Source: Thalia democratica (taxonomy: Eukaryota). From it: DNA of 64,000 bases. The position numbers were made by a program, and so were the translations under genes. Below are positions 9,913-55,117 of the stretch, one piece after another. The notes beneath the pieces were generated by a model that saw nothing but the letters and a program-made list of their open reading frames with translations, searched no databases and was not told the DNA's origin. Within the stretch, counting starts at the first letter, position 1; every line of letters starts with the position of its first letter. The DNA lies in contig OZ241828.1 in NCBI GenBank assembly GCA_965202585.1, positions 37,448,001 to 37,512,000 on the forward strand. The letters are read 5' to 3'.

Positions 9913-10158
9913 ACATTATTAAACACAAAATTCAGTTAATTTTCGTCTAGTTTTATTTTCTTTCATTTTTTATTTCGTTTAATTGATTGTTTACTACTAA
10001 AGATTTAAATATTATAATAGATATAAATAATAAAAAAACTATGATCGTAAGAAACTTTCTAAGCATGTGGTGTACGACTCGATAACTGAAAGGTTCCTTT
10101 GTACACCAGGTCCTTAGACCAAACTTTTTGAGCGCTTTTTTTATCGTTCAATAAACAA
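9913..10158 (-). repeat. Dispersed repeat family R1, long copy
   Basis: The reverse complement matches 63771-64000 over about 230 bp (e.g. GTTTGGTCTAAGGACCT.GTGTACAAAGGAACCTTTC.GTTATCGAGTCGTACACCACATGCTTA). Confidence 0.85.
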
Positions 10159-11469
10159 CATTTTAAAACTTGTAGATAAGTATTTTGAAAAGATTTTTTC
10201 ACAAATTTAGTAAGATTTAAAAACATAAATAAAACAAGTATTTTTTATGTGTCTAGAAAATTTAAACCTTTTTAAAAACTAGACGAGTTTAGATTTAAAA
10301 AAGTCAAAGTAAAGAGGTTTGAAACTACAAAAAAATTGTTGAGCATTAAGAAATTTTCGTCTATCATTGTTACTAAAAATATAGACAAGAAAAAAAAGCT
10401 TTTTAGATAACATTTTAATTTTAAAATTTAAATTTGTATAAGAAATAAAACCTACAATCATAAGTTTTACTTATAGTATCGAAGGACATAACATAATAAA
10501 CTATTTATAATATTAAAATATTTTTAACTAAATAAAAAAAACAGAAACCATGCTAAATAGCTAAAGGCTTTAAAAGCTTTTATATAGCTTAATATTAAGC
10601 ATATCTATTTTAGTAAGTTTGTTAGCTTTATATGCTATCTTTAATAATTTATAAAAATATAAACTAGAATAAACAAAATAAAACACTATTTAATCTTATT
10701 ATTAAACAATAAACCTACTATTTCTTCAACTGTTTATAAATAGTAAGACTAAGTTTCAAACTTTAATAAAGCTTTATATAATAAACAAGTATCTAATTGA
10801 CCAGAAAATAGTTCATTTGTTATTTTTTTAAACTAAAGTGTTTAAAACTTAAAAACTTTGAAAATGTTCTGTAAGTCTTTAGCGAGTGATAAAATAGAAC
10901 TTACTGGTTATAGTTAGGTTAAAATAGCATAAGTGACTTTTTCGTAGAAGTTTAAAATAATAAATGACTCTTTGCGTTGCTGATATTTCAATATTGAAAT
11001 ACACGGTTACTTTCCTACGAGTTATCTAGTAAAACTTTGGTCGTGAAATAGAGTTAAGAAGCTTGGAGTTAACCATTTATATACGAAATTGAGAACTATA
11101 CTTGCGTTAGAGGATTATAAATTATAGTTTAAAGGTAAATTCTTAATGACTAACTACTTATGGCTAATAGTTTAAGAAAAACATAAGTTAATTCACGGTC
11201 AAATACTCAGTGCAAAAAAAAACTACTCATAAAAAAGAGTACATGTTAGCACTCTATTTATAAATGACATTTAAAACAAAAATAATAGTTTGCTAAAATC
11301 TTCATGAAAAATTTTAACAAATTAAGAGTTTTTTATTTGATGAAAATCTTATTTTTTATTTTAAGAAATGTATATAAACTCCAAATATTAAATATTAAGT
11401 TCAAAGTTTAAAGTTTCGATTTAATAAATTTAGAACCACATTGCTAACTTTTTAAATTTGTCTTTAACT

Positions 11470-15430: not shown

Positions 15431-18400
15431 TATTATTTATTTACATGTGTTATGTTACGTTTCTGCAGAAGATTAGAAGTGCACAATGTTGAAAATTGTT
15501 TGAGTGTTTTGTTACTTTGTTGTTGAATGTTTAAGAGTTGTTTTGTTTTAATTTTAAGTAAGTATAAGTTTTTTGTTCTAATTTACTCAGAACACAAAGA
15601 TTTTATTAAAAAAGGTCTGCAACATTTTAATAATAACTAAATGAGTTTATAATTTACTGTATAACTTTTTATTAAACAAATATTTTCTAAGTGAAATTTA
15701 CAATAGTTTTTAAAATTCACAAAATAACTGAGTATAAAAACGTTATATTTGTTTCAGACACAAAAAAAAGTACTAAGATTGTTTCTTGTTTATTCAAGAT
15801 TAAAAGAAAACATAATTCGATTAAGACAGAAAATAATTAAAGCTGTTTTATCAGTTAACTATTATAAGAATTTCTTATTATTCTTATTCTGTTTATCGCA
15901 AGTTTTTCATTAGAAAAATTGCATAAACTATTACTCATCTATTGGTTATGAGAAAAGTAAATTCAGATGTTTGATGATTAGAAATAAAATTCAAAATATT
16001 AACTTTAAGCTCATTAAGTAATAAAATTTGTAGTTTAAAAAAAAAATTAACACTTTATTATAAATCTTAGCTATAAATGTATTAGAGAAAAAACTGCTTG
16101 TTCTTAAAATAGTCATGTGGTGATTTAAAGTCTGTAATTTTGGTTATTATTTAATTAAGGTTTGAAAAAACGTTTGTATTTATAAAAAGTTATAACTCCA
16201 GTATTAATCGAAATTTACTTCAATAAAAGATTTTTAAGATTAAAAGAAAAATTTAAAGCAAAATAAAAAAGTCTGTTTTATTCAGTGTTGTTTTTAAATT
16301 TAAATACTTAGTCAATGGTGCATATGTTTATAAACAGATTAAAAATACTTTTTTCTAATGTTCTTAAGACCAAAGTGTTATTTTAGATGAAAAAAAACTA
16401 AAAAAAAAACCTCAATTAAATATTTTTTTATACCAGTGTACAAAATAAGAGCAACAACTTTATTTATACTAAATGTAATAGCTATTGAACACATATAATA
16501 AAAAAATATTTTTTTCAAAACCGGTTTATTGACAAATAAAACTTTAAAAGCTTACTAATGTAGTTTCAATTGATTTCCTTAGATTACTTTTATCTAGAAT
16601 AAAATTTCAAAACATCGATATAAATTTTACTTGCAGTATACAAATAAATTACAGTAAACTTCTATCAACTTTAAAGTGTTGCATACACTATAATTTTTAA
16701 TTAGAGATTTTTTTACTATTTATAATTTTTGTTTTGAAAAAAAAAACCTTTTATTTTAGAAACTAAAAGTTTATTGTAAAACTTTGAGATTAACAATTTT
16801 CAAGCAGTCTACTGAAAACAGACTAAGAAATTTTTTGAGAGTTGAAGCTAATTACAGATTTTTTTTATACGTTGATTTTCTTATTATTTAGTATGATTAA
16901 ATTTTAAATTTCTGTCAGTGACTAAATAGAAAGTAACTATTTTTACACTATTTTGATTTGAAGTTTAGTTATTTACAAGAAGTTTAGTTATTTTCTTGAA
17001 ATTAATTTTATATAAAAAAACTACAAGTTAAAATGTAAAATAAGATATCTAAAGTAGTACTATTAAATATCATATCAGACTTTTTTATTTAAAATAAATT
17101 TTAGTAAGTTTATCAAAACAAAAAATTTAATATATCTAAAGTTAAACATGTTTTAATCATATAAAATGTTGAAAATAAAACTAGTTTAAATTATTAAAAA
17201 AAACTAAGACTTTAAACTGTTCATATTAAACAAACTATTTCCGGTAGAACGCGCTATACTGATGCTTGTTACGGTTTTAAAGTGAATGTAAACACTTTAA
17301 AAAAATGTATATTATGGTTTTATAAAAATTGTTAAGTTAAACAAAAAAGCATATAAATAGTTTTTATTGTAAAAAAATATATACAGTTTTTATGGTCGTA
17401 AGAAAAACGTTGAAAAAGAAAATATTCAGAAAAAAGGTCGATTAAAATCAGAGTTTTGAATAATTTTAACTGAAACATTATACTGTCTTGTTGTACCTAT
17501 TAAAAAAAAAAAAAACTCATTTGAAAATATAAACAGAAGTTTACTATTTTCATTTCAAAAGGTAGTTGGATTATTGTTAGTTAATACAAATCGTTTATGT
17601 ACTTTTAAGTAAAGTTTGAAAAAAACCTATACAATTTAAATAATTAAGACACAAACAAACATTTTCTAATTAGAAATAAGATACTTTTTTTTACAATGTT
17701 ATTTTGTTTTTCGTGTTCTTCAAAAAAAATTAAAAAAATAACAAAGTTAAAACTGTACATTAAGATTTTAATTACGTTTATTACAGTTTATTTTTTAATT
17801 AGACAAGTATTAATTAATCATTATATGAAATTTCTATAAGAATAGTTGTGTTTATTTGTTTATATTATGTTAAGTACAAGTTATTTTTTTTGTTAGCTAA
17901 ACTTGTTTGTTTTAAATTTTTGTTTGTTGACTTTTTGTTGTTTAATTTAGACTTAAGTAGCTTGAAACAGGTATTAAAGAAAAAAGATTAATAATCTCTA
18001 AGTAAATAACAATATAGAATGTTTGTTTTTCAGGGATTTTCACAAAATTGATAAGATTTAAAATCTTTTACAAATAGATATACCATTGATTGAGTAAAAA
18101 GAAAGTAGAATATCTTGAATCTACTATTACTATTACATGTTTTTGTTTAAATTGAAAAGTACAATATCAATTTTTTCAAAAGCCTTATTTAAGTATACGT
18201 ACTACTCATTAAAATAAAAGCTACAATCGCTGATTATTAATTTGCTTAAATATTTAAGTATAAGTAACTTTAACCATATGTTTATAGTCTACAATTATAA
18301 AACTTATAATAATAAAGTTTAAACAAATATATTTTAAGTTTTTAGTATATAGTTTAAATTATACTTCAACTTAATTTTTTATACTAAAGTATATTTTTGC

Positions 18401-19112
18401 AAGTATTTGGAATGTTTTGAATTGTTAGGTTGTATGGTATTTTACCTATAAAAAAAAGGTACTGTACAGTTTTAACCTGTCACTAAAGCTAAACTTAGAA
18501 TAAAAAACAAAAGTGTTTCCTCTTTAAAGGCATATCTATTTAGAAAATTTATAAATTTTACTACAATGTAGCTAAACTTATAACTTCTTGTATAACTGTC
18601 AATGTAACAGTATTTTTTAAACTATGTTTTCGTAAAAACTTTGACGTTTTATCGAAGTAGTCAAACCTTATTTACGTTTACTATTTTGTTACTAATTAAA
18701 AACTATTAATGTTAGACTATATTCGTAGTTTATGTATTTGAAATAGTACAAAAAAAATAGTATCCTGTTTAATACAATACTAAAAATCAAGTTGAAAAGT
18801 TACTCTCAAATATTAGTATTGGTAGACAAATTTAAATAAATAAATAAATTCATCTCTTAAATTGTAATAAAACAACTGTTCAAATGAAAAAAAAGTAACT
18901 CGTACATTTTATGCAAGTTTAATTCACGCATAACTTACCTTTTGACTTGCTCTGCAAACCAAAAGGTTAACGAATTGCTCACCGCATGAAAACAACACAA
19001 TTCCATTCAGACAAATTCACAATGGGGCTCGCACTTTCAAATGAATCGTGCAATAATTTGCATTACCATTACTTCGCTGTAAAACACAAACTATTTTGCT
19101 CGCCCCAACTTC

Positions 19113-19316
19113 AAGCCACCGATTACTCAAATCTCAAGCCGAAAGCACAAATATGCAGGCGCCCTGCTGTCTATCACCCCGTTCTGGATAAAAAAGTCTC
19201 CCCTTTTCATCAAAATTGCGGGCGCCAACGTGTTGCGCGACCATTGTGTCCCCTTCTTACGTGAAAAGATTGATCGCTCCGTTGAAAATTGTGCATAACG
19301 CAAAAACGCCATTTTG
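19113..19316 (-). promoter_or_regulatory. Paralogous cis-regulatory module A (upstream copy)
   Basis: The reverse complement shares ordered blocks with 54376-54548: CAAAATGGCGTT, CGATCAATCTT, AAGGGG(A/G)CACAATGG, TGGCGCCCGCA and GGCGCCTGC. Confidence 0.7.
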
Positions 19317-22300
19317 TCGCAAATGATGCACTTTTTTATAATTGATAGTTTCGATTTAGCAAAAAAACATTATGCAAATTCGTACAAATTGTAAAAAGCA
19401 GTGGGTAATAAAATATTGTTTTATAATGAGAAGAAAAAAAAAACTTTAAGCACAACTCTCACTTCCTTAAGATTGTGCAATTTTATAGGCCTTATACAAA
19501 TGAAATTGACCATTGAAACAAATAATGGCCTGATATTGATAAAGTAACATATGTTTTAATTGACTGTGACTGCCCAAATTTTTATCCTGCTTACGGAGAT
19601 TGATAGAAACAAAAGTTTTTTTTAGAAAATTACAACAAATACACTATTATGTGGTTAAATGGATTGTTTTAGAACATTTTACAGTTTGAATTAAATTATA
19701 ACATAAGTACTAGTAAAAAATTTTACAAATGCTAACTAGTTTTAATTTTGATAATAAATTTTTTCCTTAAAAAATACAAAGGTTTTTATTATGTTGACAA
19801 AAGTAACTTATAATCGAATTCAACACTTTTAAACAAAATTGTTCAGTAAATTATCACTAAAAACATTAAGTTTTAAAGTTGATAAATATTTAAATGGTTT
19901 AAGTTAAGTATAGCGTATTTTAGCTGGCGGATTGTATACATAAGTGAGTATTCTTATCTTTGAAATTGTCATATCTTTTTGTATTTTCGCGACAATAGAT
20001 CTGCTATTGACCATTAAGCAACGTTAAAAAAAAAAATTAACCCTGGGCGCTTTTCAACTCACCGCTTTGTTTACAGTTTGTTAATAAACGACGCTTTAAG
20101 CTTTTAATTTTTCCACTTAATTTCATTTAAAGTTTGAAGAAAAACTAGACAGTCGTTGCTATTAAATTATTGAAGCTGTTTGCAAAAGCTCATTTTGTTT
20201 TAAAGCAACAGGCAGGCAGTGCAAAGTACTTGAGCGATTGATTGCATCTTAAACACTTTTAAAGTGACCTAAATCCCAGCGAGAGGCACGAGATACGCTC
20301 GGCGAAATATGCACAAACTTCCCAGCTTTCCGATGCTTATCAACGCCGATTATGGAGCTTTAAAACGGGATGAATTATAGATAATTTCCGATAAGCCAAC
20401 ACCGCTTAGCACAGAAATTAAACACTTTTGAACGAGCGCTTTGTGTTTTGATTCGGATACAGTTTGTGTTTTGTGTGATTGCACACAAGGCTAAAAATAG
20501 ACTTAGATGATTAGTATAGAATAAAATATAGCTTGCTTTTGAAAAAAACGTACAATGTTTTGATATAGATTTGAAAGCAAAAAATTTTAGTTGTTAATTT
20601 AGTTTATCATACTTTATTTTTTTTTTGTTCTTTTGATATAATACAAATGTATAATACTTAATAGAATTTTTGGTAAAATTAAGCCAAAATTTTTAAACCG
20701 TCTAAAATGAGTTGGATATTGATTTACTTGTGTTGTAAAGCTAGTCATAGAACTTATACTACTCAAAAATTAAACGTTTATTTGTTTATTGATTTAACAT
20801 ACAACTTATAACTTAAGTTATTTATTAAAAGTTAAAACTTAACTTTTGAAGTAGTTAATATTAAATGAACACTTATAAAAAAGTTGTGTTATAACACTGT
20901 AATATATAACATTTTACTAAAACTTAATAAAGTACTTTTAGTACAATAATTAACAAAACAAAACTGCACTAAACATCTTCATTAACTTTAACTTACCACT
21001 GGCTGTTTAATTAACAAAGCCTGAACAATCTTATTTGATGTAAAATTTATTTTACCAACCAGTTCAAGCATGAAGGGAAAATAAATATTTGTTCCGATGC
21101 ACTACACTAGTCATACAAATATTCTGTGGGAGCTCATGAAACAAAGCACCTTTAATTGGCAAGTCAATACGACCGGATCAAATTCAACTCGAACTTCTAA
21201 AAATAGAGAAGGGAAATTAAAATAACCCGGTCAATTGGCAGCGAGTTAGAAGGGCTCAGTGGAAGCTACGAAAAACTCATCCAAATATTTACCGTAGACG
21301 AAATCATGACGTAATATTTGATTTCGAAGGACAAAAGTTCATCTTGCCTGGGTGCTACAAAAACAAACTTGAGTTGATGGTTGTCTGTGCTTTGTTTTTG
21401 TTTTCTAATTGCGAGTAGGTAGCTTTGCAGCGCCAAAAATCATTAAAGTTTTGCTTGAAAGTTATTGCCCATGATTGTAATGTTTATTAAACAAGTAATT
21501 ATAGTTAGAGTTAATTATTTGATTTAAAGTATTCTTTTTTCATATTAAAGTACTCATAGCTTACTTTTAGTGCAATTTTGAAATTTGTCATCAGTTTATA
21601 TCTAATTTAATTCAGAACTATTCAAATAAGTTGCGACTGTGGATAGGTAATTGATCCACAATAATCACTTTAGAAAAGTAATAAAATAGCCAGTTACACT
21701 TAATTATGGCATGTTGATAAAACGACGTTATTAGTTGTATAAACATATACCTTCACGCTTTTATAATTACTTTTTAAGTGAAAGTCTATTATGGTTGTTG
21801 TTGTTAAGAAGCTTAACTTTGTTTAAATGCGTGGTGTTGTATGAAGTCGTGAGAAAATTTTAAAGTTTAAAAAGACAACAATGCTATCTTGATGTCAGTG
21901 AAACATGTTAAAAGTAACTTTGGTTCTGTTGTATTTAGCAGCTTTTAAAAGTGTAATATATTTTGAATATAACGCTGAGTTGTGTGTCTAAAACTACAAG
22001 CCACTTAGCGCTTTGTGAAACTACAATGCTAGCTGAAAAAGTACAAAAGAATCTAAAATAAAATAAAATCAGTTTCATTTATAACACAGCTTGTTTGTTG
22101 CTAAATACAAAACTTTCTTGCAACTCAACTTAAACCAACTTAAACTCAATACAACTGATACTGTGGTGGGTTCTTAAAGGTGTTTCTTTAATTCCTTTTA
22201 TTGTTACAAAGTTTATCTAAAGTTCAAATCTTATTTTGATTGTGTCGAAATGTAGTAGAATTCGTTGGTACACCGCTAGTGCTTACGTAACAATAGACTT

Positions 22301-25599: not shown

Positions 25600-25800
25600 G
25601 ATTAAGTCGGACGCAGGCCAGCGCGCATTAACAGACATTGTTAGCAGGTTCATCCGATACGCGATTAAAATGCAAACAAATCACTTTTTCTTTCGCCGTT
25701 CGACGCACAAAATGGCCGCCGCCACTTAAGTATCAAGTTTCCGCGCACACCAATCAGATAAGGCGCGCACCGGGCAAGATGTGTTGAGAGAAAACAGAAT
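25600..25800 (+). promoter_or_regulatory. Proximal regulatory/promoter island of the GATA gene
   Basis: CpG-rich, with a YY1-type CAAAATGGCCGCC (25708-25720) and an overlapping CCAAT/GATA element, CCAATCAGATAAGG (about 25750-25763). Confidence 0.4.
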
Positions 25801-26032: not shown

Positions 26033-26291
26033 ATGATTCCAAGCAGGGACAACTCGAACCGCTGGTTCCAGACCAACGGGATCGGGTCCAACCACCACGT
26101 CAATGCGGACAACTCGGGCTTCTACCCCAGTAGCTATGCCAACGCGCACCTGGGCACCGGGGCGTGGGACGGGCACGGGTACCCGGGTCCGAAGATGGAC
26201 GCCAGCGTGGAAACTCTGGAGTACTTCCAGCAGATGGCAGCAGACCAGCAGAACTCGTCGTTTCCGCTCAACCCGTTTCAAATGTATCCAG
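26033..26291 (+). CDS. GATA1/2/3: GATA1/2/3-class transcription factor, coding exon 1
   Basis: GC-rich ORF MIPSRDNSNRWFQ...PFQMYP. A phase-1 donor GTTTGT at 26292 joins in frame to exon 2. Confidence 0.8.
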
Positions 26292-28405
26292 GTTTGTTTG
26301 CAGATTTGTTTTAAAAAATGTTTTTTGTTTAGTTTATTAATTAATCTTAAGTATAAGTTAAAATATTTTAAGGACATGATTATTTTGCACGCGTGAAACA
26401 ATCGATTTATTATTTTACCGAGCGGAATAAACTTATCTGTAAAGTCTTAATTAAAACATTAGCTACATGTGAATTTAAAAACTTGTGAATGTTCTATTAA
26501 AGTATATTAAAAAAGCTATAAAATCTTGTCAATCAACAGATAATGAATAACTTTACTATGAGTTAAAACAACATTAAAATGTGATCTCCAAAAATGTTTA
26601 TTTACATTTCGTTTTGAGGGATCGGTGTTATTTATACTCATATAGAATATTAGAGAATAAAAGTATTTATGCTAAAATTACCACAAAACTAAAATAAAAG
26701 TTTTCTCAGTTATCATTAATTATTAAATGCAAAGGTTCTAACCTTAGTAATACTCTTTACCATTTCAGCTTACAAGCTTCCAAAGTTTTTCGTAACTCGA
26801 ATCGCAATTAAACATCAATTAATCAAAGCTATTTGTGTTAAAGCTGATTAAAATCTCATCGCAGTGCAATTAGGGCAAGTGTGAAACCCCAACAATCGCC
26901 GCATTTTGTTTATTTGGAAACGGAAGTCGCTTCCAAATAGAAAAATGACCTTTCGTCACTTTCAGTTCTTTTTTTAGCGCAAACAGTATCAATTATTCAA
27001 GTTTTCTTCTTCTTCTTGCTTATTGTCCATTGCCTGGCGTTTTCAACTTCGTGTAACATAAACATGCATCGCGTTTTTCTCTGATTTCAAAATAATAACC
27101 GCTGAAAAGTATTGTGTTGCTGTTTAAAGCTGGATGTGTGTCATCTTTCCTGCGTAAACTCCTCTATTATCTATTTATTGTCAGAATACTTTCTGTGCAG
27201 TTGTTGATATTGTGGTAATGTTTAAAAACTGAACTATTGTTTAAATAAAATTAATTCGTTAAGTTCGTTTTAGTTTGCATCAAGCTACCGAACGTTACGT
27301 GTGGTTTTGTTTTCATTCTATCATTAAAAATTCTAAAGATAGAGTAACAGGCTTGAATAACGTATTAAGAATAATTAAAAACGTACTTAGATGCTTATCA
27401 AAATACAAATTTTGATTGCCTTGTTATAAATTGAAAAGGATAACAAAAATGTAAAAAAATTTATGAAAGTAAAAAAAAACTTATTGTTTTGAATTTTTTT
27501 TGTTTCTTGAATATTTGCTTTTCTAATATAACATACGAGGTAATAGTAGTAAATTTAAGTTTTATTTAGTAAATATATTTAAAAACGAACAGATTATATA
27601 TGGAAATTGTTTGTATTGCTACCACCTTTATATTTAAAATAAACGACAAATTTTAACACTCTTGTTTTACTGAAATAGTTTACTAAGTTCTTGAAAATTG
27701 AAAAGGTATTCTTATTAACTTTGCAAAATAACTACCTATAAAACTTCTATCAAAACGACCATAAAAGTACATATGTTTATACTACACAGCATCATTTTTT
27801 AAACATTTTGCTAGTATTTAAATACTTCAAAAAATAAGTACTTGAAACTTTTTTAAACGATCAACTAATACATTAATAGAGTAGTTAGCCAAAATATAAA
27901 ACATAACTACTAAATTTTACGCAAAAAAACTTAACAGTAAATAGTTTTTATTTTTAAAACTTAGTTTAAATTTCATTTTTTTTTTTATGACCATTACTTT
28001 CTAAATTGAAATGAGTAAACACCTACTAATCTAGACAATATACTTATAACAACTTCAAAAGCTTATTTTAAAAATACATACTTAACTTTTTTTTAACTTG
28101 CAATATAAATACGTTTAAGTTTATCCTGAAGCTTAAATCAATTTGAAGATTATAACTTGTTGTTGTAAGATTATATTGATCCATATTGATATGGAAATCA
28201 AGACACTAACATGTTTTTACAGAGTTCTTTAAACATCTAAAAACAAAATACAAATTACTTCTGACGCAATCGTTTAAAATTTTTAGCTACCAACTTCAAA
28301 AAAGATATTAAAACATATTTTTCTGACAAATGATACATCTGATACTAATCCTTGGTTTTTGACGTATAAATTTTATAAAGTTTAGACAAGTTTAAGATAA
28401 AATTT

Positions 28406-28506
28406 GCGAGGGACGCCTATGAAAGCCGCATATTGTAGAAAATTGGTGAAAATCTCTTATCGACACAAAATAAGCGAGAAAATGGTGATAATTTTCATTC
28501 TACTTT
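28406..28506 (+). promoter_or_regulatory. Paralogous module D (intron-1 copy)
   Basis: Blocks GGGAC..CCTA, TATCGA-N6-ATAAGC and TCTACTTT recur inverted and in order at 50972-51080. Confidence 0.45.
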
Positions 28507-29402
28507 ATATCTTGTTACTGATAAACGCAGTAAATTGGTCAGAAATTGGGGGTAAGATATTGTTTTGACTCTGTGTTTAAGTTTGAAGATTTTTTATTTT
28601 TCATTTAGAATGTTTACAATTGCTCTTGTTTATTGAGAAAAGTTTAATTAAACAATTTCAGAAATGATTTTAACACTATGAAACAAAATTGTCCATTTAT
28701 GTACTTGATTACAGGAAAAAAAAATTACCATTGTTTTAGAACTCAACTAAAACAAAGGATACAAGTTAATGAAATATAAAAACTTTATATTGTTCATAAT
28801 TCAGAAATAACATACGTTATAAACAATATACAAAAATATATAGTTTTGACACGATAGGTTAATGCATAAGCTTATACAATATTTTTGATAAAAAGAAAGA
28901 TCTGAACAATTAGTTTAATTACCGACTTAAGTTGCTATACTTATAATACTTTTCTTTCAGTATAAGCATGTCTTTTTTAAGCTTCAAATGAGTAGTCAGC
29001 AACATAGGATTTGTGTTAATATGAAAAAATTAAATTAAAAATCGGAATTATGGCAAGATTTATACCTGGCTAAAAAAAATACTGTTTGAAAACGCAAACT
29101 CACAAAAAAGCAACATTGTGAAAGTTGTGAATTAAGAGCTAGAGACAGGTGTTTACTTAATCGCTTGCCACATGCCGCGTAAAAAACTTTGCACTTTCCT
29201 TACGACGATCAGGCCCTCAGGCTCCCAGCTAGTAGAAAAAAAAGAAACTTTCTGTTTATCTTCGCTTTGCAGCATAATTGACTCGGCTTTGTAAAGCCGC
29301 CTGATCTGGCTTTTGCTTGGCATTATACACATATACAAGAAAGGAACGAGAAATTATTTTCATAATATCGCTAACAACTTTGTTAGTTTGTTTAACACAC
29401 AT

Positions 29403-29505
29403 GCTAATTTTCATCTAATGCATGCCACCAAACGAGATTTCGGGTGGAGATAGGCGTCGCGGCAAATGTCGCTTCAATTTTACACTCTCGGTCAACACGC
29501 TGAGA
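29403..29505 (+). promoter_or_regulatory. Paralogous module C (intron-1 copy)
   Basis: Blocks GCTAATTT(T)C(A/G)TCTAATG, CACCAAA, GTGGAGATAGGC, GG(C/A)AAATG, AATTT and ACAC..GAGA recur inverted at 50640-50735. Confidence 0.65.
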
Positions 29506-30560
29506 CGGATAAAAGAGAAAGCACCAGATATGTTGTGCACCTCCACACAGCATTATGTTCAGGAGAGACATGAGTGCTGGTTTGCTTACAATATAATTCA
29601 TTAAGAGCCGAAAGACGGTGCTAGACTTTGTTTCGTTGCTGAGTCGCTAATGCGTTTTTGTTCAGCAAAGAAATTATTGATTTGCTCCGAAGACCTTTCG
29701 CATAATAGAGGCCTCTTTGCAGTTCTGGTGAAAACGCATCAGGCGAGCAAATGGTCCTTCATGCTCTAACGTATCAAGGAGCAGGAAAAAAAACTGTTAA
29801 TTTAAAATTTAGTCATGCTTTTTGTCCTGTAGAGCCTTCGTTAAAATCTGTTGCATGCAGTTTCTTAATTAAAAGCCAAATGCATGGAACTGCAGTTTAC
29901 TTCAGTTCCAAATGTCAGTCGGTTTTAAAAGAAGAGGACTACTTTTTTGTTTCAACAAGACGGAATGGAAAAGCTGTGACAGATTGTCTTTAGATAGGAA
30001 AGATAACGTCATTTAATTTCTCTTATCGACAGAAGTACTAATGCCGGGGTAACAAGTTTCATATTTCTGTAACAATAAGTAACTTACTTACTACTATGTA
30101 TTAGCAAACTAAACACACATGACATTATAGTCGTAAAAACTCTGAATTGCTTTATGTTTCTTTATACAAATGTTGAAATTTTGTACTTGCTTTAATTATA
30201 TAACGCAAACTGACCGAAACATGCACAAACAACAAAAAGAACAAACAAACTAAAACCATAAAAAGTAACATAGAAAAAATAATATTGTTAACATTAACAT
30301 TTATAAGTTAAAAAAACCTTGAAAGAAACCAGAAAAGGGTGGCGCGTGTGTGAAAAAGCTCAACGCAATAAACCTCGAATGAAACGAGAACGCGTGAGTG
30401 TTTTAATTAAGACTTCCCTTTTGTACACAAAGCTGTTGAGCCCGAATCAATCGTTTCAGATCAAAGCGGCTCGGCCCTGAAACCAGCCAGTTGTTTATTT
30501 TCGTTTCTGCGCACAGTCATCGCTTTCTAAGGTGACTAAGTCGCTTGCTGCAGCTCTAAA

Positions 30561-30729
30561 TTGAAGCGATTGGTCACACCGAAAGTCGTTAGGCGAAAGA
30601 CTCTCATCGAAAATTAACTCGTTAGCCAAATCACCTCTCGTTTCTTAATAAAGGTGGGCATGAAATGTTTGAGCGAAAAAGCCATTGAAGTTCTTCATCA
30701 CCTTTCAATTTGTCAATTTGTGTAAACAA
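30561..30729 (+). promoter_or_regulatory. Paralogous module B (intron-1 copy), 169-bp near-identical core
   Basis: 165/169 nt identical to the reverse complement of 50193-50361. Contains GATTGG (CCAAT) and a Fox-type TGTAAACAA. Confidence 0.9.
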
Positions 30730-30883
30730 ACAGATTGCTGGCTTAGCGCTTATCTAATTAAATAGTCATGAGAATCGGCACTTGATGCTGTAGCTGATGA
30801 AAGTTTTAATCATAAAACAGATTTAGCTTGAAGATTACCGTAACATGACAGCCAGATTGAAATCTATTCTGTTTTATCCTCTC

Positions 30884-30916
30884 TATATAAAAAAGTTGTG
30901 CTTTCGCTTGTCAGTT
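30884..30916 (+). promoter_or_regulatory. Candidate internal TATA-Inr core promoter in GATA intron 1
   Basis: TATATAAA starts at 30884 and TCAGTT has its A at 30913, a spacing of 29 nt (canonical). Confidence 0.45.
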
Positions 30917-31266
30917 ACTTGCACGAGAACCAATACACACCTTAAGTATTTAAATTGCTTTAATGACGAGCTTTAAGGTGTAAAAAGCAATTTTAGTTTT
31001 TCAATACATTGTAAACCCGTTATTATTATTTTAAATTCTTTTTTCACATTGTTTTTTTTAAATATATTCATGCTGAGTACTTAAAACACTGCTTATTGCT
31101 ATTTAGAGTAAAATTCTTAAAACCGAAGTTAGTAACTCAGAAAAAAAGGAAAACAGAAACCTGTTAAGAACTTAATTTATAAATTTTTTACAAGTCTTCA
31201 TTATCTAGTAATATAATTATCTTATGAGTAAATAAACTGAATTAAAAACCAATACTTTTTTTTCAG

Positions 31267-32049
31267 CACGGAGGCTGCACCACCAAGTCCACTCGCACGC
31301 CACCTCGCCAGCCGCCAACCCGGGGCTTTCCCTTTTCTCGTCGTCGGCCAAAAACGGCGTTTTCCACCCGCACCTGCCCGCGGCCGCCCACCACCAGTTC
31401 AACGCCAACCACTCGTGGACCAACAAGCACCGGGGGCTGTACGACTTCAACCTGCCCACTTCCGCCCAGCAGCAGCAGGTCAAGGTCGAGACCACTTCCT
31501 CCGTCTCGTCCAAGTCGGACACGAGCGTGGCGGCGTGCAAGCCCCAAGCGCAAGAGGGGGACACGACCGCGGCGGCGGCGGAAAAGTCAGCGTTCGGGGA
31601 AATAACCAGCTGCGAGAACGGCGCGTCGCAGCAGCTCACCTCCGAGCAGCAGCAGATGACCTTTCACTTCCCGACGCCCCCGAACGAGGACGGGGAAGTC
31701 CCTTCAGCCAACTCGACCCTCGCCCAGCAGGAGAAGGCCGCCAAGCCGCAGGCGTCCAACGAGCCCAACATCATACTCAACGGCGCCTCTATTACGTCAT
31801 ACAACGACCAGGAGTTGGCGGGCAGCAACAAGCTTTCAACCTACCCTTCCGGAGGGACCAACGGAGAGAGCAAGAGCAGCATGAGCTCGGGGCCGACGGC
31901 TTACAGCAGCGCGATGCACACGCAGAGCTTCGCGCAGCAGCAGCAGGACATCAACGAGGTGGCGAAGTACGCGGCTTCCGCCAACAGCCTGTCGACGAGC
32001 CAGTACAGCAACAGCACTCTGGCGAAGAAGAAGAGCAGAACTAACGCGT
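31267..32049 (+). CDS. GATA1/2/3: GATA1/2/3-class transcription factor, coding exon 2
   Basis: Acceptor TTTTTTTTCAG (31266). The 783-nt open frame includes TFHFPTPP (compare the GATA2/3 FTFPPTPP motif) and ends KKKSRTNA. Donor GTGAGT at 32050. Confidence 0.92.
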
Positions 32050-32467
32050 GTGAGTTGTACATGTTGAAATGATGAATTGGAATATTTATGTAGTTGACAG
32101 CGGCTAATTCATAAGAAATTGTACGAATGTGTTTTGCTTAAATTATGCATTCGTTTTATACTTTTTTTAAAATAATAACAATAAAAGATTACGAAAATTA
32201 TTAAAGTACAACTTTTTAAATGTTTTATTGTTTGTAAGCATTAAAGTTTGTTTAGAATAACATGTTATAACGTTGTACTAAAAAAAAACCTAGAAATATA
32301 AGTTTTTATTTTCAATACTTAAATTATATAATAATTAAATAACTGAAAACACCAAAACTAGCTGAACTATTACATGTAAAATACCGCAGCCGAGTTTTAT
32401 GTAAAAGCGGCCTGCGCGTACATTTACTAAACAAACAACCAGTTTGACTTTAAATTAACACGAACAG

Positions 32468-32610
32468 CCCGCGAGTGCATCAACTGCGGGGCGACCACCA
32501 CGCCGCTGTGGCGCAGGGACGGGACCGGGCACTACCTGTGCAACGCGTGCGGTCTCTACCACAAGATGAACGGGCAGAACAGACCGCTGGTCAAGCCGAA
32601 GAAGCGGCTT
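32468..32610 (+). CDS. GATA1/2/3: GATA N-terminal zinc-finger exon
   Basis: [47 protein letters not shown]. Acceptor AACAG (32467), donor GTGAGT (32611). Confidence 0.97.
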
Positions 32611-32827
32611 GTGAGTTTGCTTGTTTTTTAATTAACTTATTCTGTTTGAATAAATTTTGTTTTAAAGCTGATATTTAACAACCTTTAGTTTACTGTAAAA
32701 GTTAAAAATTGTATTTAATAATCTGCACAAATATAATTTATTCAGCTTACAACAACTAATGCTTTTTTTCTTTAAGTTTTCTGTAACATACGAAAGTCAT
32801 CATTAAAATTTAATCTCTTTGCAACAG

Positions 32828-32953
32828 TCGGCTGCGAGGAGGGCGGGCACCAGCTGCAGCAACTGCTCCACCACCCATACGACGCTGTGGAGGCGCAACT
32901 CGAGCGGCGACCCGGTGTGCAACGCGTGCGGACTTTACTTCAAGCTTCACGGG
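32828..32953 (+). CDS. GATA1/2/3: GATA C-terminal zinc-finger exon
   Basis: [42 protein letters not shown]. It is 126 nt and phase 0-0, as in vertebrate GATA2/3. The linker SAARRAGT is GATA1/2/3-type. Confidence 0.97.
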
Positions 32954-32999
32954 GTTGGTAAACACATATATGAGAATAAGCAAGTATGCGCACGGATGT

Positions 33000-34330
33000 A
33001 CGTTTCGCTCTCCCTTAATGGCATCGAGCATTAAGCGCGTAAATATTTAGCAAAGCTGTGCGCGTTAATGAGTTTTAGAGGTCAATTAGAGGAAGCGAGC
33101 GAACGCGTTCACACGGTAAAGTTTATTGAAAGATGAACGCTGAAGCTGACCGCAACCGATCAGCAGCCTGCTGCGTGCATCAGCTTTTGCAGAACAGGTA
33201 GTTAGAGCTGTGTTCAGCCTCAAAAACACGGGAGGTTTTCAAATGTAAAACTTCAATAGCTGCTTGTTTACAAAAACAACGCTCAACTGTTTCAAACTAA
33301 AAAAAAAGACACTGGCATATTTACGCATTAATTACTGATTTTATCACATGCAAACAGTATCAGAGCGTAATTGCTCTCGGTAGCAGCAGCCAATTAGTGA
33401 GAAATGCTTGCACAGTAGAAGGTGCCAAACTTAGATCTCGAAGATTAGCACCAACAAAAACTTTGCTCGCAGCCAGCCACTTTGATTGGAACGGAAAGGC
33501 AAACAAGGAGGCTGTGTTTGATAGACGTAAACCCAATGAATGTCAGTTGTAAACAGAAAGAACACGACGCATGTTTTCAGGCTGGGCGACCGTCATTGAA
33601 TTGGCCTTCGAAATGCAAATAAGATAAATCCAAGTACAAATATCTGGTGCGTCATTGAGAGTGGGAATGTTCGTCGCTTTTTTTGTCCACTTTCGATTGT
33701 TTTTCGTTCTATTCATGCCTTTTTCGGTCAAACTTCAAAGCCGAAACCACACAGGACGGTATTCAATTCAGCATTTTTTTTTTGCTTGAAAACTCGCTCG
33801 AAAATGTTGAACACTTAAACAAACACGGTTAGAAGCCTTATGGACTGAACGCTGTAATTTTCCAAATAAAAAAGCATCTTTCAAAAAAAGCGAGCAAAAT
33901 TTTCGGCTTATTGTGATTTGAAGTGGAAATTGCTCAAAGCGAGAAAATTGTGTGTGTGGAAAAGAAGCGTGGTAATGCACATAATCCAGTTTAGACGACC
34001 AAAGCGCATAGAAGCAAATTGCTGGCCGTTGCAGCCTCTTGCTGATTTTCGAGTGTATTGAAATGTTGTCAGCTTATCTCCTCTGCCGCTGGCATGCCTC
34101 ATGAACTTTTGTTTTCTTTATGCAACTTGCTTCCCATTCTCGCTTGAGCCGCAAAGCAGTGACCTGTCCGCGCTGTCATTTCGAAATTTCAATAAAGGCA
34201 CCGTGTAATTGCGCATTTCATAGGCTGCGTGTATAAGTGTGCTGCATCAAAGATATTGGTAAGGTATTGAGGAAAATGTTTCTTTGCGGCGAATAACTGA
34301 GTTTCATCGCTGAAATCTTGCAGTAATATA
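33000..34330. promoter_or_regulatory. Long GC-richer non-coding block filling most of GATA intron 4
   Basis: About 1.3 kb of high-complexity sequence with no supported ORF, unlike the neighbouring AT-rich introns. Confidence 0.4.
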
Positions 34331-34537
34331 TTAAGTAGTTTTGAATTAGAAAACTAATATAAGTTCTTGCTTAATTGTATTACGTTGTGTATGACACAAA
34401 CTTTTAATTACTCTAAAAAGCTAAAGTACTGAACAAACCTGTTTACAAGACTTTCACTGCAAGCTAAAAAACGTTTAACAATCTCACAGCGCCGCTAACA
34501 ATGACCACAGTAGTAACAGCTAAAATCTCCTTAACAG

Positions 34538-34903
34538 GTGAACAGGCCGCTGACGATGAAGAAGGACGGCATCCAGACGAGGAACAGGAAGATCAGCACC
34601 AAGATCAAGAAGTCCGGGGTGTGCAGGGACGCGAGGTACGACCAGACGTTCAGGTTCCTCGACAACCCCACCGGCTTCGCCAACCTGCAGTCCTACTCCC
34701 AGTCGTTCAACCCGATGCAGTTCAACCCGCACCAGCACCAGCTGGGCCACCAGGGCTTCGGCCACCACGTCAACCACCACTCCATGTTCCCGCCGCCCGG
34801 CCACCACGTCGGCCACCCGGGCATGACACCCGCGCACGCCCACCACACGTCCAACACGCTGGCGCTGGGAATCGGGGCGCACTCCGGCATGGCGATCGGG
34901 TGA
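34538..34903 (+). CDS. GATA1/2/3: GATA basic tail and His/Gln-rich C-terminal exon (to in-frame TGA; or to 34899 if spliced)
   Basis: Acceptor TTAACAG (34537). Reads VNRPLTMKKDGIQTRNRKISTKIKK...GMAIG*. The TGA at 34901-34903 lies inside a GTGAGT donor at 34900. Confidence 0.93.
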   Translation: MNRPLTMKKDGIQTRNRKISTKIKKSGVCRDARYDQTFRFLDNPTGFANLQSYSQSFNPMQFNPHQHQLGHQGFGHHVNHHSMFPPPGHHVGHPGMTPAHAHHTSNTLALGIGAHSGMAIG

Positions 34904-35932
34904 GTTGGGTTTTTAGTTTTTTTTTTTAAAACGGTTCTAAACTATTTTGTAAAGGTTGCTAAAAATAAGTATGTTGATTATCAATAATGTGTTGGTTAAG
35001 TAAAAATGACCATTATTAAAATAAACAACTAGGATGTTTGAAATGGAAACATAAGTTTTTATTAAATTAAGTTCAGTCAAAGGCTCATGCTAACTTATTT
35101 AAAAGTTTAGCATATTTAATTACGCTGATTAAAACTAAACTTAAAGGTAATTTTAAATAGTATTTTAAATTGACAAACAAGTGCATTGCAATTAACAAGT
35201 GATTTTTTAAAACAAGAAAATGTTTGTTTGGTTACACATGCCACATTTTTGATTGCCTCTCATGTTTACTTAACGCTGAAAGTTTCTATGTCGCCATATT
35301 AAATTACATTTTAAATTTAATTACCGGTTGAAATTTTTTCGCTGCACTTTTATTACCCAAAAACCAGTTTACTGTTTTCTAAAACATATATACTTGAGTT
35401 AAAATTAGGATAAGAAATATTAGAAAATGTATGCTTTTAAACGATTGACTGCAGTACTTTAAAAAGTAATTAAGAAATTAACCAAAATAAATAAATAAAT
35501 ATTGTAATTAGAATTAGAACATGCGGTTCCTTGACTTAATGTATGATTAAACACCATAGAAAAAGTGTTTGATTCTTTTAAGTAAAACTAACTATTATTT
35601 TACTTTTAATGATAATAAAAACGTTGCAAACAAATTGAGAAAAACATCTGCAATACAATGAATTTAAGCACCTTACTTTAAGAATTAAAAAATATAAGTA
35701 AAGCATATTTTTTAAAATTATTAACAAAAATTTTCTTTAAGTAAATATTTATTATTGTTTATTGAACTCTCCATTAAAATTAAATTTCATAAAAAAGTAA
35801 GAGTATAAAAAATGTTTATGACATAGTCTAAAAACAACTTCCACCTTTGTGCAACTTTATACAAAAGCGTTTATTGTAAAAACGAACCCTTTTCGCCCAA
35901 AAGTACACCACACTAATTTGTTTTTACTGCAG

Positions 35933-35975: not shown

Positions 35976-37789
35976 TTGTGATGTCACATTGACGACGTGT
36001 GGAAGCAGCAGTGAAAATTAACAGACGCCATTTTCGTTTGCACGCGGCATTGTGAGAGGAGACTTAATTTAAGGATTGGAAGAGCGGTGTTGTTAGATGC
36101 AGTGTGTCGCTTCAGCGTGTCTGCTGAGGATATTTGATTGATTCTGACTCTATCAGAATCTTATGCTGCTTTATAGTACAATACTTTTGCATAAATACCA
36201 TGTTTTGCCAAATTAAATGCTAGTTTGGAAGCGATTTTAAGTATAAATAAGTAATGATTGTTAATTATTTTTTTATGAATTTTAAGGCGGTGTCATATCC
36301 AAATAGTAAAGGTACAAAAACAGTTTTACAGACTTGATTTAATTCACTGTTAGATATTTGCTTTGTTTAATTTACGAAACAAAACATTAAAGCATTTTAA
36401 GCTGTTCTTTTAGTTTATGCATTGTTAAACATTTAAAGCTTTTGGTCTATAGCTTTAAAAAATACATTGTAATAGTGTTATATATTCTTTTACTTTATTA
36501 ATACTCTTCATACTTAAAGTTACTAGCATTTTAGCTAATTTTAAAGGTGTTAATTTACTTTTGTCAGAGAATTTAACACCTTAAATCAATATGATATTTA
36601 CTTTCATACAAACATTTTTATTTTTATTTTTTAAAACTGAGTTATAATTCAAAATTTTAAGTCAAACAATAAAACTTGTTCAAACGTTAATATTATAGAT
36701 TTTGACTTTTAACTTTTACTTGTGAACTTTATTTGTTTAAATATTTTGCTCTGTTTTATGTAAACAAAACGAAATTATTAAATATTTTTGTTGACAATAA
36801 CTCTGAGACAAGAATTTCTCACTTTTTACTCTTAAAATCAAAAAAGTTCTATGATTAAAGTACCGTTCAAGATGAAATTTAATTTTAAAGTAAAAAAGCC
36901 TAAAATAACGTATTTAAATATTCCTTAACAACTTTATTCAGTTCGCTTGGAGATTAAGTTTTATCAATGTGTCTGATTTTACAAACTAATAAGAGATTGT
37001 TGTTTTATGTTATAAACTTATTGCAAAGTTTATTAGTTAACTAACACTCTGTACTCCTTTTATGCTACTTAGCAAAACTAAAAACATTAGTAGAGCTAAG
37101 TCAGATTATCGTTGTGATAACATTTAGTAAAATTTGTTTACTTAATAAACTATTTTAATTGCAAAAACTCTTGTTTTATTTGTTATTCATCTTTTTGATG
37201 AGTAATGTGGTAAAGGTAACGAAATATTAAATAAACATTAATCAGAACTATACACAGAGAAATTTATTACAACTTTTAAATATAAAAATTAAAAAAGTCA
37301 AGAAAAAAAAGTATTATGCAAGATTTAATATTGGATATAAGCATACACTTATTAAATACATTGATAGTTTAATGAGAAATTTCTTTGAATATACTAAACA
37401 ATATAGTTAGTTTATGATTCAGTAATAAATAAAATATAATTCAAATCTCTAATATGCTTAATCTTTAAATGTTTTAGTAAGCTCATATAACTTTTAATAG
37501 TTGATTAAGCTTAAGTATCATATACAATATACATATGTATGTTAAATACTATTGATCTCTTTTCATTTTTTAAAGCTCAAACGTTTTACATACGTTAAGT
37601 TTGATATTTTATCAAAACAAGACTTTACCGCTTTAATCATGAAAAATCTATTTTATACATAGTTCGAATCATTTTACGATTTCTTTTAATCTTTAAAAAA
37701 ACTATATTTTCATTCATTTAATAGTAAGTGGTTCTATAACGCTAAGACTACTAAATTAAACTGTAATATCTTTGATTTTAAGATTTAAA

Positions 37790-42931: not shown

Positions 42932-43012
42932 TTGTTTATTGAACGACAAAAAAGCGCTCAAAAAGTTTGGTTTAAGGACCTTGACTACAAAAAAAAGCTT
43001 TCGGTTATCGAG
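42932..43012 (+). repeat. Dispersed repeat family R1, fragment
   Basis: TTGTTTATTGAACGACAAAAAAGCGCTCAAAAAGTTTGGTTTAAGGACC...TTCGGTTATCGAG matches the reverse complement of the 10.1-kb copy. Confidence 0.75.
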
Positions 43013-45660: not shown

Positions 45661-48483
45661 GTCGTTAGCTAGACTGCTTTCGGATGTCTTGGCCGGTCAC
45701 CCCTGCTTGTTTCATCTCTTGAATCCGTCAAAAAAAAAATCGAGTAAAAATTTTAAACTCGATGACAACTCGTTTGATCGGCTGACTTCTTGCTGAGGCT
45801 CACAACAAACAATCGTGAAATCGTCGAGCGTCTGACGACACCAAGCGGATAGAAAAAAAGTTTTTCATTCTGTTTTTTTAGAAAACACAAAAAAGAAACA
45901 GGTTCGTTTATTCTTATGGATAATGTTTAAATAAGTTTATAAAATTTCAAAAATTAACAATATAAAATGAATTGAACTTGTAACAGGTATTTAAGTAATT
46001 TCGTACAAATGTTGCGTAATTTGTCTCCTTAAACGCATGAGTTTTTACTTATTTTTTTGCAAGTATTACATAACATTAAACATTAAAAATTTTTTCTATT
46101 AAATATACATCTTCTTTAAGTTTTGTATAGTTATATAATGAATTTTTTTTTACTAAGTTGATTTTAGTAAAATTTAAATAAATAAAAAACTAAAACACAA
46201 TTTTTTATTTTATTTTTACTTTATACTTATAATACCTAAAATATAGTTCTGTATATAAAAACTTCAAACTCTTATCTTAAGTATGGTTTAAAAAATTATA
46301 TTCTAAACACTTTTGTAAAGTCTTTCTAGTACTTTTTAACAACCAGCCAACAAAATAAAAGTTCATTTCGTTTGCAATAATTTTTAAGATATACAAATTC
46401 ACTGCAAAAATATTTTTATATAGTTTAATTGGCTTTAAACTATAAAAAAGTACTTTTTAAAAAATAATAAAAGGTTGTAACAGTACAAGTTGTTTTTAAA
46501 ATTAAAAAATATTCAATTAGTTTAAAATAAACTAATATTTGTAGATATTGTTATCAAAATATCATTTCTATTAAAAAAAATCAGTCGAAAGTACCCATTA
46601 TAAATATTTTTAATGATCGAAGAGATCACCATTTTAGACAACTATTTATGCGTTTACACTACTACATTGCTGAAGCTTCAGTACTTTGAAAACTGTTTGA
46701 AAACCCGAATGAACTTGTATGAATGAAGCTTGAGAATTGTAATCTGATATATTTGATAAACTTAAACGGAAGCTGGTATTGTAATACGGTTCCAAATTAT
46801 GTCATTTGGTTTGTATTTTGCTTTGTTAAATGATCATAACTGCTACAACTACTTCATTCATAAATGTCATTTAAGCTGAAAATGTACCAGAAACAGATAC
46901 TTTATTTTGAGTTAAATGACAAGCTAAGTTTTTAATCAAAAAAAAAAAAACTTTTATTATTTTTACAATATTAAGTGTAAGTTTTTAAACATTGGCAAAT
47001 GTCATTTAAATTGAAAGCAAACTGTTTACTATAATTTGCCTAATTATTTAGTACTTCTAATATTGAAAAAAAGTCTTAACTTTTTTTTTCTCTATTACTT
47101 AAAGTACATTATAAAAGTATAGAAAGAAACTTTATAAAGTGTAAATGCTAAAAAAACATTTGTTTCAACTTTTAAACAAGTTCATTATATTTATTTTAAA
47201 GAAAACCGATGATCATACTTTTAAAATCATAAATCAAACTCGTTATCCAATTAAATTTTTCGAAAATTTTAATATAAGCAAATATTTTGAAGTTGTACTG
47301 AATAAGTTTAGAATTATCTTTTTAAGTTTAAAATTTTGTAACCTCTTTTAACTTTTCTTCAGTTGTTAGTACTTAATAAGTAAACTTCGACATTAAAACG
47401 GTTTTATTCAACATAAAAAACAAAACTAAAATTGAACACCCTTCTCTTTACATTTCCCTATTAAAACTGAATTGTTTTTATTCTAATATATGTTTCAATT
47501 AGTTTTTTTAAGCTAACTTGTAGTTTTAAAAGAAGCCTATGAAATTGACAAAGCTACTTAAAAGCTCTCATTTTAAAACTTTTTTAGTTAGTAACTGCTT
47601 TTACATTTAATGATTTCAAACTATGTTAGCTAGACTTCGTTTTGACACTTTAGATAGTCTTTATTTTTAAATTTTTTGTACTTTAAAATGTTGAATGTAT
47701 GATATACAAAATTAATACTTAAATTCATACTGAAATTAAATTTAATTTTACAATAAATTTATGAAAAAAACTGACGTTTTTTAATTAATATTTATTTAAA
47801 ACTACATTTTAATGAAAACATTGATTTGATTATTAAAATATTAATTTAGTAACAAGCTTTTAAAGCGTTTTTTTAAATTTAGCTTCTTAAAATCTATTAA
47901 ATTTATAAGTTTTGAGTTTAAATAAGCACTAGTTTATGAAAGAAACTTTACTAATATTGTTCACCATCAAAACTTATTTCATAACGAACCTGGTCAAAAT
48001 TACTACTCGTTTATCTTTATTTAGATATATTAAATTTACATAGAATAGTATCTGCATATTTTGTATAGCTTTATTGTAGTCAAGTTTTACAAAAAGTGCT
48101 GAGTATTAACAAAAATTTAGTTGATTTAATAGTAATAATAACTAACATTATAATACATTATATAAAAAAAATTATATAAATTAAATACAATTTAATAGTA
48201 CTACATTTTTGTTGTTTAAAGTCTTAAAAAACTGAATAAAGTCAATGTTTTGAGCATGCGTAAAAATTTTTTAAATTCAAAATGTTACATTTTTGCTTTC
48301 TATATAAATGTTAAAATCTACCTCAGTATTTATATATTTTTTCAAACGTATATTAATTGTTTTGTCGATTAGCTTTTCACAAAATACTTACTTGTACAAA
48401 ATATTTTCACTTTAAAAAAAACTAACTTTTTTTTTATAAATAGTATACAGAAGTGTATTTAAATGTTTTCAATAATAAATACA

Positions 48484-49053
48484 TTACTAAAAATATATAA
48501 CAGAGTGCATTTCATTTTGTTTAAATTTGTTTAAGTACTTTCAAATAGGACTCGTCAGAAATTGTTTCCTACTGGATTGCAATGAATACAAATTAAAATA
48601 AAATTATACTACAGTTTAAAGTTTTAAGATATAAAATGACGTAATAATCAAAAGTTTAAAATTAAATAAGTTCTAATGCTAAACAAATTTGGTATACTAA
48701 TAAAACTCGGTAGAATTAAAACATTCTAAATAAAGAAGCGATAAAAAATTTTTAAATTAAAACTATGCTTAAAAATAATAAATAAAATTTTTTTATCGCT
48801 TCTTTAATTAGAATGTTTTAATTCTACCGAGTTTTATTAGTATACCAAATTTGTTTAGCATTAGAACTTATTTAATTTTAAACTTTTGATTATTACGTCA
48901 TTTTATATCTTAAAACTTTAAACTGTAGTATAATTTTATTTCAATTTGTATTCATTGCAATCCAGTAGGAAACAATTTCTGACGAGTCCTATTTGAAAGT
49001 ACTTAAATAAATTTAAACAAAATGAAATGCACTCTGTTATATATTTTTAGTAA
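48484..49053. repeat. 570-bp near-perfect palindrome (fold-back); possibly a TA-flanked MITE
   Basis: Left arm 48484-48753 and right arm 48784-49053 with a 30-nt spacer and about 4 differences by eye. Reads TA|CTAAAAAT...ATTTTTAG|TA at the ends. Confidence 0.92.
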
Positions 49054-50192: not shown

Positions 50193-50361
50193 TTGTTTAC
50201 ACAAATTGACAAATTGAAAGGTGATGAAGAACTTCAATGGCTTTTTTGCTCAAACATTTCATGCCCACCTTTAATAAGAAAAGAGAGGTGATTTGGCTAA
50301 CGAGTTAATTTTCGATGAGAGTCTTTCGCCTAACGACTTGCGGTGTGACCAATCGCTTCAA
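50193..50361 (-). promoter_or_regulatory. Paralogous module B' (downstream inverted copy)
   Basis: The reverse complement is 165/169 identical to 30561-30729. Confidence 0.9.
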
Positions 50362-50639: not shown

Positions 50640-50735
50640 TCTCTGTGTGAATAGGAACATTAAATTCAAAAGCCATTTTCCATAATGCCTATCTCCACTG
50701 GTATCTTTTGGTGAAAATCATTAGACGAAATTAGC
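50640..50735 (-). promoter_or_regulatory. Paralogous module C' (downstream inverted copy)
   Basis: Ordered block match to 29403-29505, including GCCTATCTCCAC (50687-50698), the reverse complement of 29444-29455. Confidence 0.65.
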
Positions 50736-50971
50736 CGACGTGTAAAAATAAATAACACGGTTTTTATCAATAACATTGAAATGATACGCTTATTTATTCT
50801 GCCGTGAGTGTTCAGCGGTCGACAAATGCGCTGCAGAACGGATATTTTTAGAAGCCTGTGGCCTCAGAATAAACAAATTTAAATGTTAGCGGTACGAATA
50901 ACATGCACAGAAATTACCTATAACCGTTCGATTTTTTCTTCCCAGATTAGCAACTGAACTTCATTCTTAAG

Positions 50972-55081: not shown

Positions 55082-55117
55082 GGGACTTGGTGTACAAAAG
55101 AACCTTTCAGTTATCGA
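55082..55117 (+). repeat. Dispersed repeat family R1, short core fragment
   Basis: GGTGTACAAAAGAACCTTTCAGTTATCGA matches the R1 core. Confidence 0.6.

Follow-up and report, generated by a model that had tools for sequence, protein, structure and literature searches.

The window analysed here, that is, the whole stretch of 64 kb, is very AT-rich (29% G+C overall) and carries a two-finger GATA transcription-factor gene, whose best solved relatives are GATA-3 and GATA-1. Three pairs of related segments surround this gene in mirror order (A, x, B ... B', x', A'), the members of each pair being in opposite orientations. The main features are as follows.

26033-34930, plus strand: two-finger GATA transcription-factor gene, with the N-finger at 32476-32550 and the C-finger at 32855-32929
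19113-19316, minus strand: module A, the stretch described in the earlier note, with five blocks and a tail; the conservation peak of the locus
54376-54546, plus strand: module A', an inverted paralogous copy of A with identical block order
29353-29480 (plus strand) and 50662-50785 (inverted): pair x/x', weak (69.5% identity over 128 nt) and colinear with A/A' and B/B'
30561-30737, plus strand: module B, in the first long intron of the GATA gene, 96-97% identical to B'
50185-50361, minus strand: module B', the inverted partner of B

A and A' are 35 kb apart and are the outermost G+C-richer islands of the landscape on either side; the CpG observed/expected ratio is about 1.1 across the whole window and is uninformative. 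The mirror order fits one old inverted duplication. The right arm contains no GATA exon, and a second GATA gene there was considered and rejected, since the window has a single GATA-finger gene and the two arms show no similarity at the protein level.

B and B' are segments of about 175 nt with sharp edges, present in only two copies genome-wide and carrying stops in every frame, and they fold no better than shuffled sequences. They are far better kept than A and A', which points to extreme constraint or to gene conversion.

To the right of A' there is an eIF2B-epsilon-like gene (60759-62710, plus strand), whose NTP-transferase, LbH and W2 domains are spread over four overlapping frames and which probably has very short introns. 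An exon for the N-terminal strand of eIF2B-epsilon was not found upstream of 60759, and A' was discarded as a first exon of this gene because its peptide does not fit.

Two copies with one order of blocks

The segments common to A and A' are listed here with their positions in the two copies.

Block 1, CAAAATGGCGTT: 19305-19316 (minus) and 54376-54387 (plus); exact, 12/12, with a YY1-like word and a Kozak-like ATG
Block 2, CGATCAATCTT: 19266-19276 (minus) and 54418-54428 (plus); exact
Block 3, AAGGGGRCACAATGG (AAGGGGACACAATGG in copy A): 19241-19255 (minus) and 54439-54453 (plus); 14/15 identical
Block 4, TGGCGCCCGCA, the first GGCGCCYGC unit: 19217-19227 (minus) and 54466-54476 (plus); exact
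Block 5, GGCGCCTGC, the second GGCGCCYGC unit: 19155-19163 (minus) and 54509-54517 (plus); 9/9
Weaker tail block: 19116-19138 (minus) and 54525-54546 (plus); common to A and A'
Extra colinear exact 14-mer: 19558-19571 (minus) and 54136-54149 (plus); about 240 nt upstream of block 1

The earlier note had claimed five motif blocks in conserved order at near-constant spacing. The order is indeed the same in both copies, and the blocks are colinear and exact, block 3 excepted. The spacing is near-constant from block 1 to block 4, where the gaps measure 28/30, 10/10 and 13/12 nt in A/A', but not from block 4 to block 5, where they measure 53 and 32 nt; between block 5 and the tail they are 16 and 7 nt. 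Each block has exactly two matches in the window, one per copy. GGCGCCYGC has four, two per module and in the same orientation, and the arrangement of these twin units suggests a pair of candidate sites for one factor.

A and A' are homologous. Their chain of colinear exact matches scores 70, while the maximum in 2872 control windows is 32, a match far in excess of what chance would give. The core is about 66% identical overall, the DNA flanking the two copies is unalignable between them, and identity is more clustered into blocks than it would be if the mismatches, equal in number, were evenly distributed (P about 0.009). A 13-mer at 19410-19422 was set aside as a probable chance match, being AT-rich and lost in the orthologues. 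A short hairpin can be drawn in both copies (19299-19320, minus; 54373-54400, plus), with the ATGGCG of block 1 in its loop and a stem in which CAAA(A) pairs with a downstream TTTG; the outer pairs differ between A and A', and the stem is AT-rich and could be due to chance.

The 802-Mb genome has no copies other than A and A'. In a BLAST search of the genome each copy used as a query retrieves only itself, and three two-block patterns (blocks 3 and 4, blocks 1 and 2, and the GGCGCCYGC pair) are found genome-wide only at A and A', with no match in a reversed control. Matches to block 3 with one mismatch do occur elsewhere in the genome, without any other block nearby. A transposon or dispersed repeat is ruled out by this copy number; membership of a high-copy TE family had been named in the earlier note as a result that would speak against its reading, and no repeat family was found.

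Conservation of module A in related lineages

Loci orthologous to A were recovered from marine metagenome contigs, mostly from Tara Oceans, which represent three related lineages (L025, L026 and L027-L030). An exhaustive HMMER search with the short frame of A led to L025 through one raw open-frame call on a Tara Oceans contig in which TGA was read as sense; the other HMMER matches (P0002-P0004) were rejected as repeat artefacts. L026 and L027-L030 came from a word search in which the frame on the opposite strand was the query. Neither short frame had an exact match on record, and of two pattern scans of JGI metagenomes one was empty and the other gave a chance match inside a bacterial gene. 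The call on L025 (P0001, positions 931-1566, 211 aa) has no translation under the standard code and is a gene-caller artefact, TGA having been taken as sense across AT-rich animal DNA.

Orthology of the contigs is assumed on the strength of their colinear alignment, which extends into the flanks. The whole length of L025 can be aligned, to 20488-18582, with 92.7-92.9% identity, and L026 shows 86.8% identity over 1.65 kb. The four contigs L027-L030 are nearly identical to one another, and their alignment is limited to 18892-19397 (80.6%) and a patch at 17918-18218. Over module A itself the identity to the three lineages is 95.1%, 94.7% and 89.9%. The last value belongs to the most distant of them, in which identity is down to 72.6% for the rest of the island described below and to 60% in the 110 nt upstream; the DNA further out is effectively unalignable.

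Within the module, variable columns among the four lineages, this genome included, amount to 3/59 in the blocks and 31/151 in the spacers (Fisher one-sided P=0.0034); the closest lineage taken alone has 0/58 differences in the blocks (sliding control, P=0.034). Blocks 2 and 5 do not vary among the four lineages, and the changes in the other blocks are a single 1-nt insertion in block 1 of L026, a G>A at 19253 in block 3 of two lineages, and an altered last base of block 4 in L026. The upstream 14-mer at 19558-19571 is unchanged in L025 and L026. Since conservation peaks at the module and change is least in the blocks, the blocks are under constraint.

The earlier note had called for a comparison of blocks and spacers across species and would have counted a loss of the blocks in orthologous loci as a refutation; the blocks are kept there and do vary less, in loci where the module as a whole remains 90-95% identical. 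Its picture of free, scrambled spacers holds between the paralogues A and A' only; among orthologues the spacers of A are conserved as well, about 20% of their columns being variable as compared to 48% just upstream. Regarding the enhanceosome-type grammar that it had proposed, order is kept and spacing is kept across blocks 1-4 but not between blocks 4 and 5, and the spacers are also conserved among orthologues. Module A thus behaves as a single constrained unit of about 200 nt, in which the blocks common with A' are the oldest and most rigid core and not five sites on free linkers.

All orthologues of A are 75-78% identical to A' over a 69-nt core, and from this about equal distance it follows that the duplication is older than the sampled lineages. 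An orthologue of A' was sought in public sequence records by means of the A' frame and none was recovered; the comparison with its paralogue is what suggests constraint on A'.

Module A is part of a larger conserved island, which ends in a splice-donor-like site.

18938-19326, minus strand: conserved island around A, about 390 nt, richer in G+C, with a sharp start about 10 nt before block 1
18933-18941, minus strand: splice-donor-like AAG/GTAAGT at the far end of the island, with GTRAGT kept in all four lineages

The one change at the donor-like site among the lineages, an A>G, stays within the GTRAGT consensus. Two octamer words ATGCAAAT flank the module, at 19056-19063 (minus) and 19372-19379 (plus); the one inside the island (19056-19063) is kept in all four lineages, unlike the upstream one. 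Past the far end of the island, at a distance of 0.7-1 kb on the minus strand, a patch of AT-rich DNA about 300 nt long (17918-18218) is 74.7% identical in the most distant lineage (L027), in surroundings that cannot be aligned. It may represent a second exon or a further conserved non-coding element. In the run of a second organism, the contig that spans 18887-19351 differs at 2 of 465 nt, as compared to about 2.5% for the contigs on either side; over its full length the island differs from the closest metagenome lineage by 6.5%, against 7.4% outside, and little weight is given to the contrast in the second organism because it is not repeated there.

Coding potential, RNA structure and candidate sites

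In copy A a frame of 61 codons (19312-19127, minus strand) is open from the ATG of block 1 and holds all the blocks, and some of the differences between A and A' look synonymous or conservative. The frame is intact in L027, with a 3-nt insertion. On the other hand, it is interrupted in L025 by a TGA at codon 17 and a 1-nt insertion, and in L026 it is shifted at codon 3; the orthologues differ in the module by indels of 1, 4 and 7 nt, and their substitutions show no three-base periodicity (p=0.84). In A' the blocks lie in three different frames, and two frameshifts would be needed to give the residues of A. No protein-level relatives of the frame were found except raw open-frame calls at the same locus, and it has no protein-level paralogue. 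A coding exon or micro-ORF is ruled out by the stop and frameshifts in orthologues and by the absent periodicity: module A is non-coding. That A could be a small protein-coding gene or exon, of which A' would be a frameshifted copy, is accordingly scarcely credible.

As to RNA, Rfam gave no match in the window or in L025, at gathering or at relaxed thresholds, and the folding energies of A and A' are ordinary (z = -1.2 and -1.1). The consensus fold of A and A' has a covariation term of -4.0 (-2.75 for the opposite strand), with 3/30 and 3/19 compensated pairs, and the term is -0.75 when L025 is added as a third sequence. A fold of the four orthologues gives a covariation term of +1.44 with 2/116 pairs compensated, four close sequences having little power. 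A structured non-coding RNA was rejected for want of an Rfam family, for its ordinary stability and for the lack of covariation support, this last being a weak argument with four lineages. Three sequencing runs hold the stretch, none of them recorded as RNA; their depth is even, about 55-100, over intergenic DNA, which identifies them as assemblies of genomic DNA.

Several of the blocks resemble the sites of known transcription factors. Block 1 contains the core CGCCATTTT, which we take to be a look-alike of the YY1/Pho consensus. Block 2 contains ATCAAT/GATTGAT and block 3 contains ACAATGG, presumably look-alikes of Onecut-type and Sox-type sites, respectively. The words of block 1 and block 4 are not enriched genome-wide (86 matches against 92 in a reversed control, and 10 against 5, respectively). 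One further word resembling block 1 is placed close to the GATA gene.

25707-25717, plus strand: ACAAAATGGCC word in the GATA promoter island, with 10 nt in common with block 1 and in sense orientation

The earlier note had placed further YY1-type sites at 25708 and 36026, and both words are present, at 25707-25717 and 36026-36034. It had also read them as a possible sign of looping or Polycomb tethering; YY1-type matches in the window number 3-4 where 0.6-1.3 would be expected, but the duplicated pair provides two of these matches, and once this pair is counted once they are within chance and no evidence of either. Moreover, the cluster of GCCAT expected of a Polycomb response element is absent, A and A' having one GCCAT each, and in the orthologous 1.9 kb GCCAT is not enriched (3 against 2.5 expected).

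Possible functions and known counterparts

The pair A/A' is most likely a known kind of element. The reading that we favour, with modest confidence and on the basis of sequence comparison, is that A and A' are paralogous conserved non-coding elements (CNEs) with a regulatory role at the level of DNA, which would be exerted on the GATA gene. They would descend by an old duplication from a single non-coding cis-regulatory module, left together with x/x' and B/B' by an ancient inverted duplication around a single GATA1/2/3-like gene. We infer that the module acts at the level of DNA and not of RNA, by presenting a set of short candidate protein-binding sites: one YY1-like, one GATTGAT/ATCAAT, one ACAATGG word and two direct GGCGCCYGC units. 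Purifying selection would have held these putative sites in both copies and in the related lineages. With A 6.7 kb upstream and A' about 19 kb downstream of the GATA coding exons, the two copies may act on this gene as distal, enhancer-type and partly redundant inputs.

The exon-like edges of the island around A, with its sharp start and its conserved GTRAGT end, count against this enhancer-type reading, as does the lack of genome-wide enrichment of the block words. These edges are also the ground for an explanation that we consider possible but rather unlikely, in which A and A' are the promoters and first exons of outward-pointing transcripts, either non-coding or with a long 5' UTR. From a start at or near block 1, transcription would proceed to the left in A and to the right in A'; exon 1 would correspond to the conserved 390 nt, and the blocks would have their effect either at the start site or as part of the RNA. 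The abrupt onset of conservation about 10 nt before block 1 and the roughly 390 nt that follow, up to a GTRAGT kept in four lineages, agree with it, as do a TATA box, TATAAAAAAG, which precedes block 1 by 24 nt both here and in L025, the recurrence of the word ACAAAATGGC in sense orientation in the GATA promoter island, and the lower conservation of the presumed promoter (-1 to -110) relative to the presumed transcribed part. However, the TATA box is lost in L026 and L027, and A' has a shorter island with neither a comparable donor nor a TATA box at that distance. Furthermore, the minus strand to the left of A shows no recognisable coding exons, and transcribed blocks acting in the RNA find no structural covariation behind them.

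The position of the copies could also be given a meaning of its own, if A and A' were a paired boundary or tether, inverted copies that bracket the GATA domain, bind the same architectural proteins and pair into a loop; we regard this as improbable. The same small chance is assigned to the more specific proposal that such a loop, enclosing the GATA gene and its enhancers, would be a tunicate counterpart of fly insulators, in which the GGCGCCYGC twins and the YY1-like word replace CTCF. A and A' are indeed the outermost G+C-richer islands, in opposite orientation, with other genes beyond them such as the eIF2B-epsilon-like gene (60.8-62.7 kb), and each carries the same ordered sites, the twin GGCGCCYGC units included, which are found nowhere else in the window. 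Yet the inverted placement follows from the inverted duplication itself and needs no function, B/B' and x/x' share the same mirror logic inside the domain, and neither copy has a CTCF-type motif, the CTCF core having no match in A or A' within 2 mismatches. A neutral origin, with A and A' as decaying remnants of a duplication and the blocks as chance islands of identity, would agree with the core identity of only about 66% and with the moderate P of about 0.009 against an even spread. It is nevertheless very unlikely: in three other lineages, where the neutral flanks can no longer be aligned, conservation peaks at the module and variation within it is lowest in the blocks, and the duplication predates those lineages.

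The paralogous CNE reading has its closest precedent in vertebrates, where paralogous CNEs lie beside two paralogous developmental genes retained after whole-genome duplication (PMC3595034, PMC1896008, PMC2394741). Like these, A and A' are non-coding, remain similar amid unalignable DNA, are conserved in orthologous loci (for copy A), lie beside a developmental regulator and show their conservation in short motif-sized cores; unlike these, they flank one gene in mirror order, by local inverted duplication. In Ciona, short CNEs (ciCNEs) are clustered around developmental and regulatory genes, and Pbx/Hox-type words have been noted in them (PMC3836708). A and A' resemble ciCNEs in being placed near a regulatory gene in a tunicate-type genome, and block 2 contains GATTGAT. 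The Ciona survey removed elements that matched several places, so that duplicated CNEs were outside its analysis (PMC3836708), and pairs of this kind are little described in tunicates. The present pair overturns no current view and is a clean, small and testable case: an element of about 200 nt whose paralogue marks about 60 indispensable letters, a choice that the orthologues confirm.

Other systems are comparable in part. Shadow enhancers are defined by overlapping activity, and most of them are not known to be recognisable sequence paralogues. A and A', as two related modules distant from one presumed target and carrying the same set of candidate sites, may be likened to them, and differ from most of them in being recognisable paralogues. 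Paired fly insulators, for example homie and nhomie at eve, are related elements at the ends of a domain for which orientation matters. By analogy, A and A' would be related elements at the two ends of the domain of a developmental gene; unlike homie and nhomie, they have no recognised architectural-protein motif. Finally, YY1/Pho sites occur at start sites and in Polycomb response elements; the core CGCCATTTT of block 1 recalls such sites, but it is a single core per module and not a cluster.

Some repeated sequences complete the description of the window. At 48479-49058 two arms of 276 nt, 98% complementary and 28 nt apart, form a large hairpin or foldback element. A dispersed repeat family has four part-copies (9913-10169, 42932-43012, 55031-55117 and 63760-64000), one of which lies 0.5 kb beyond A'. 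Near the right end, a tandem array (63299-63459) is composed of 16-18-nt units of the CGTGCAAAA type, and similar units are present at other loci of the genome (L015, L017 and L019).
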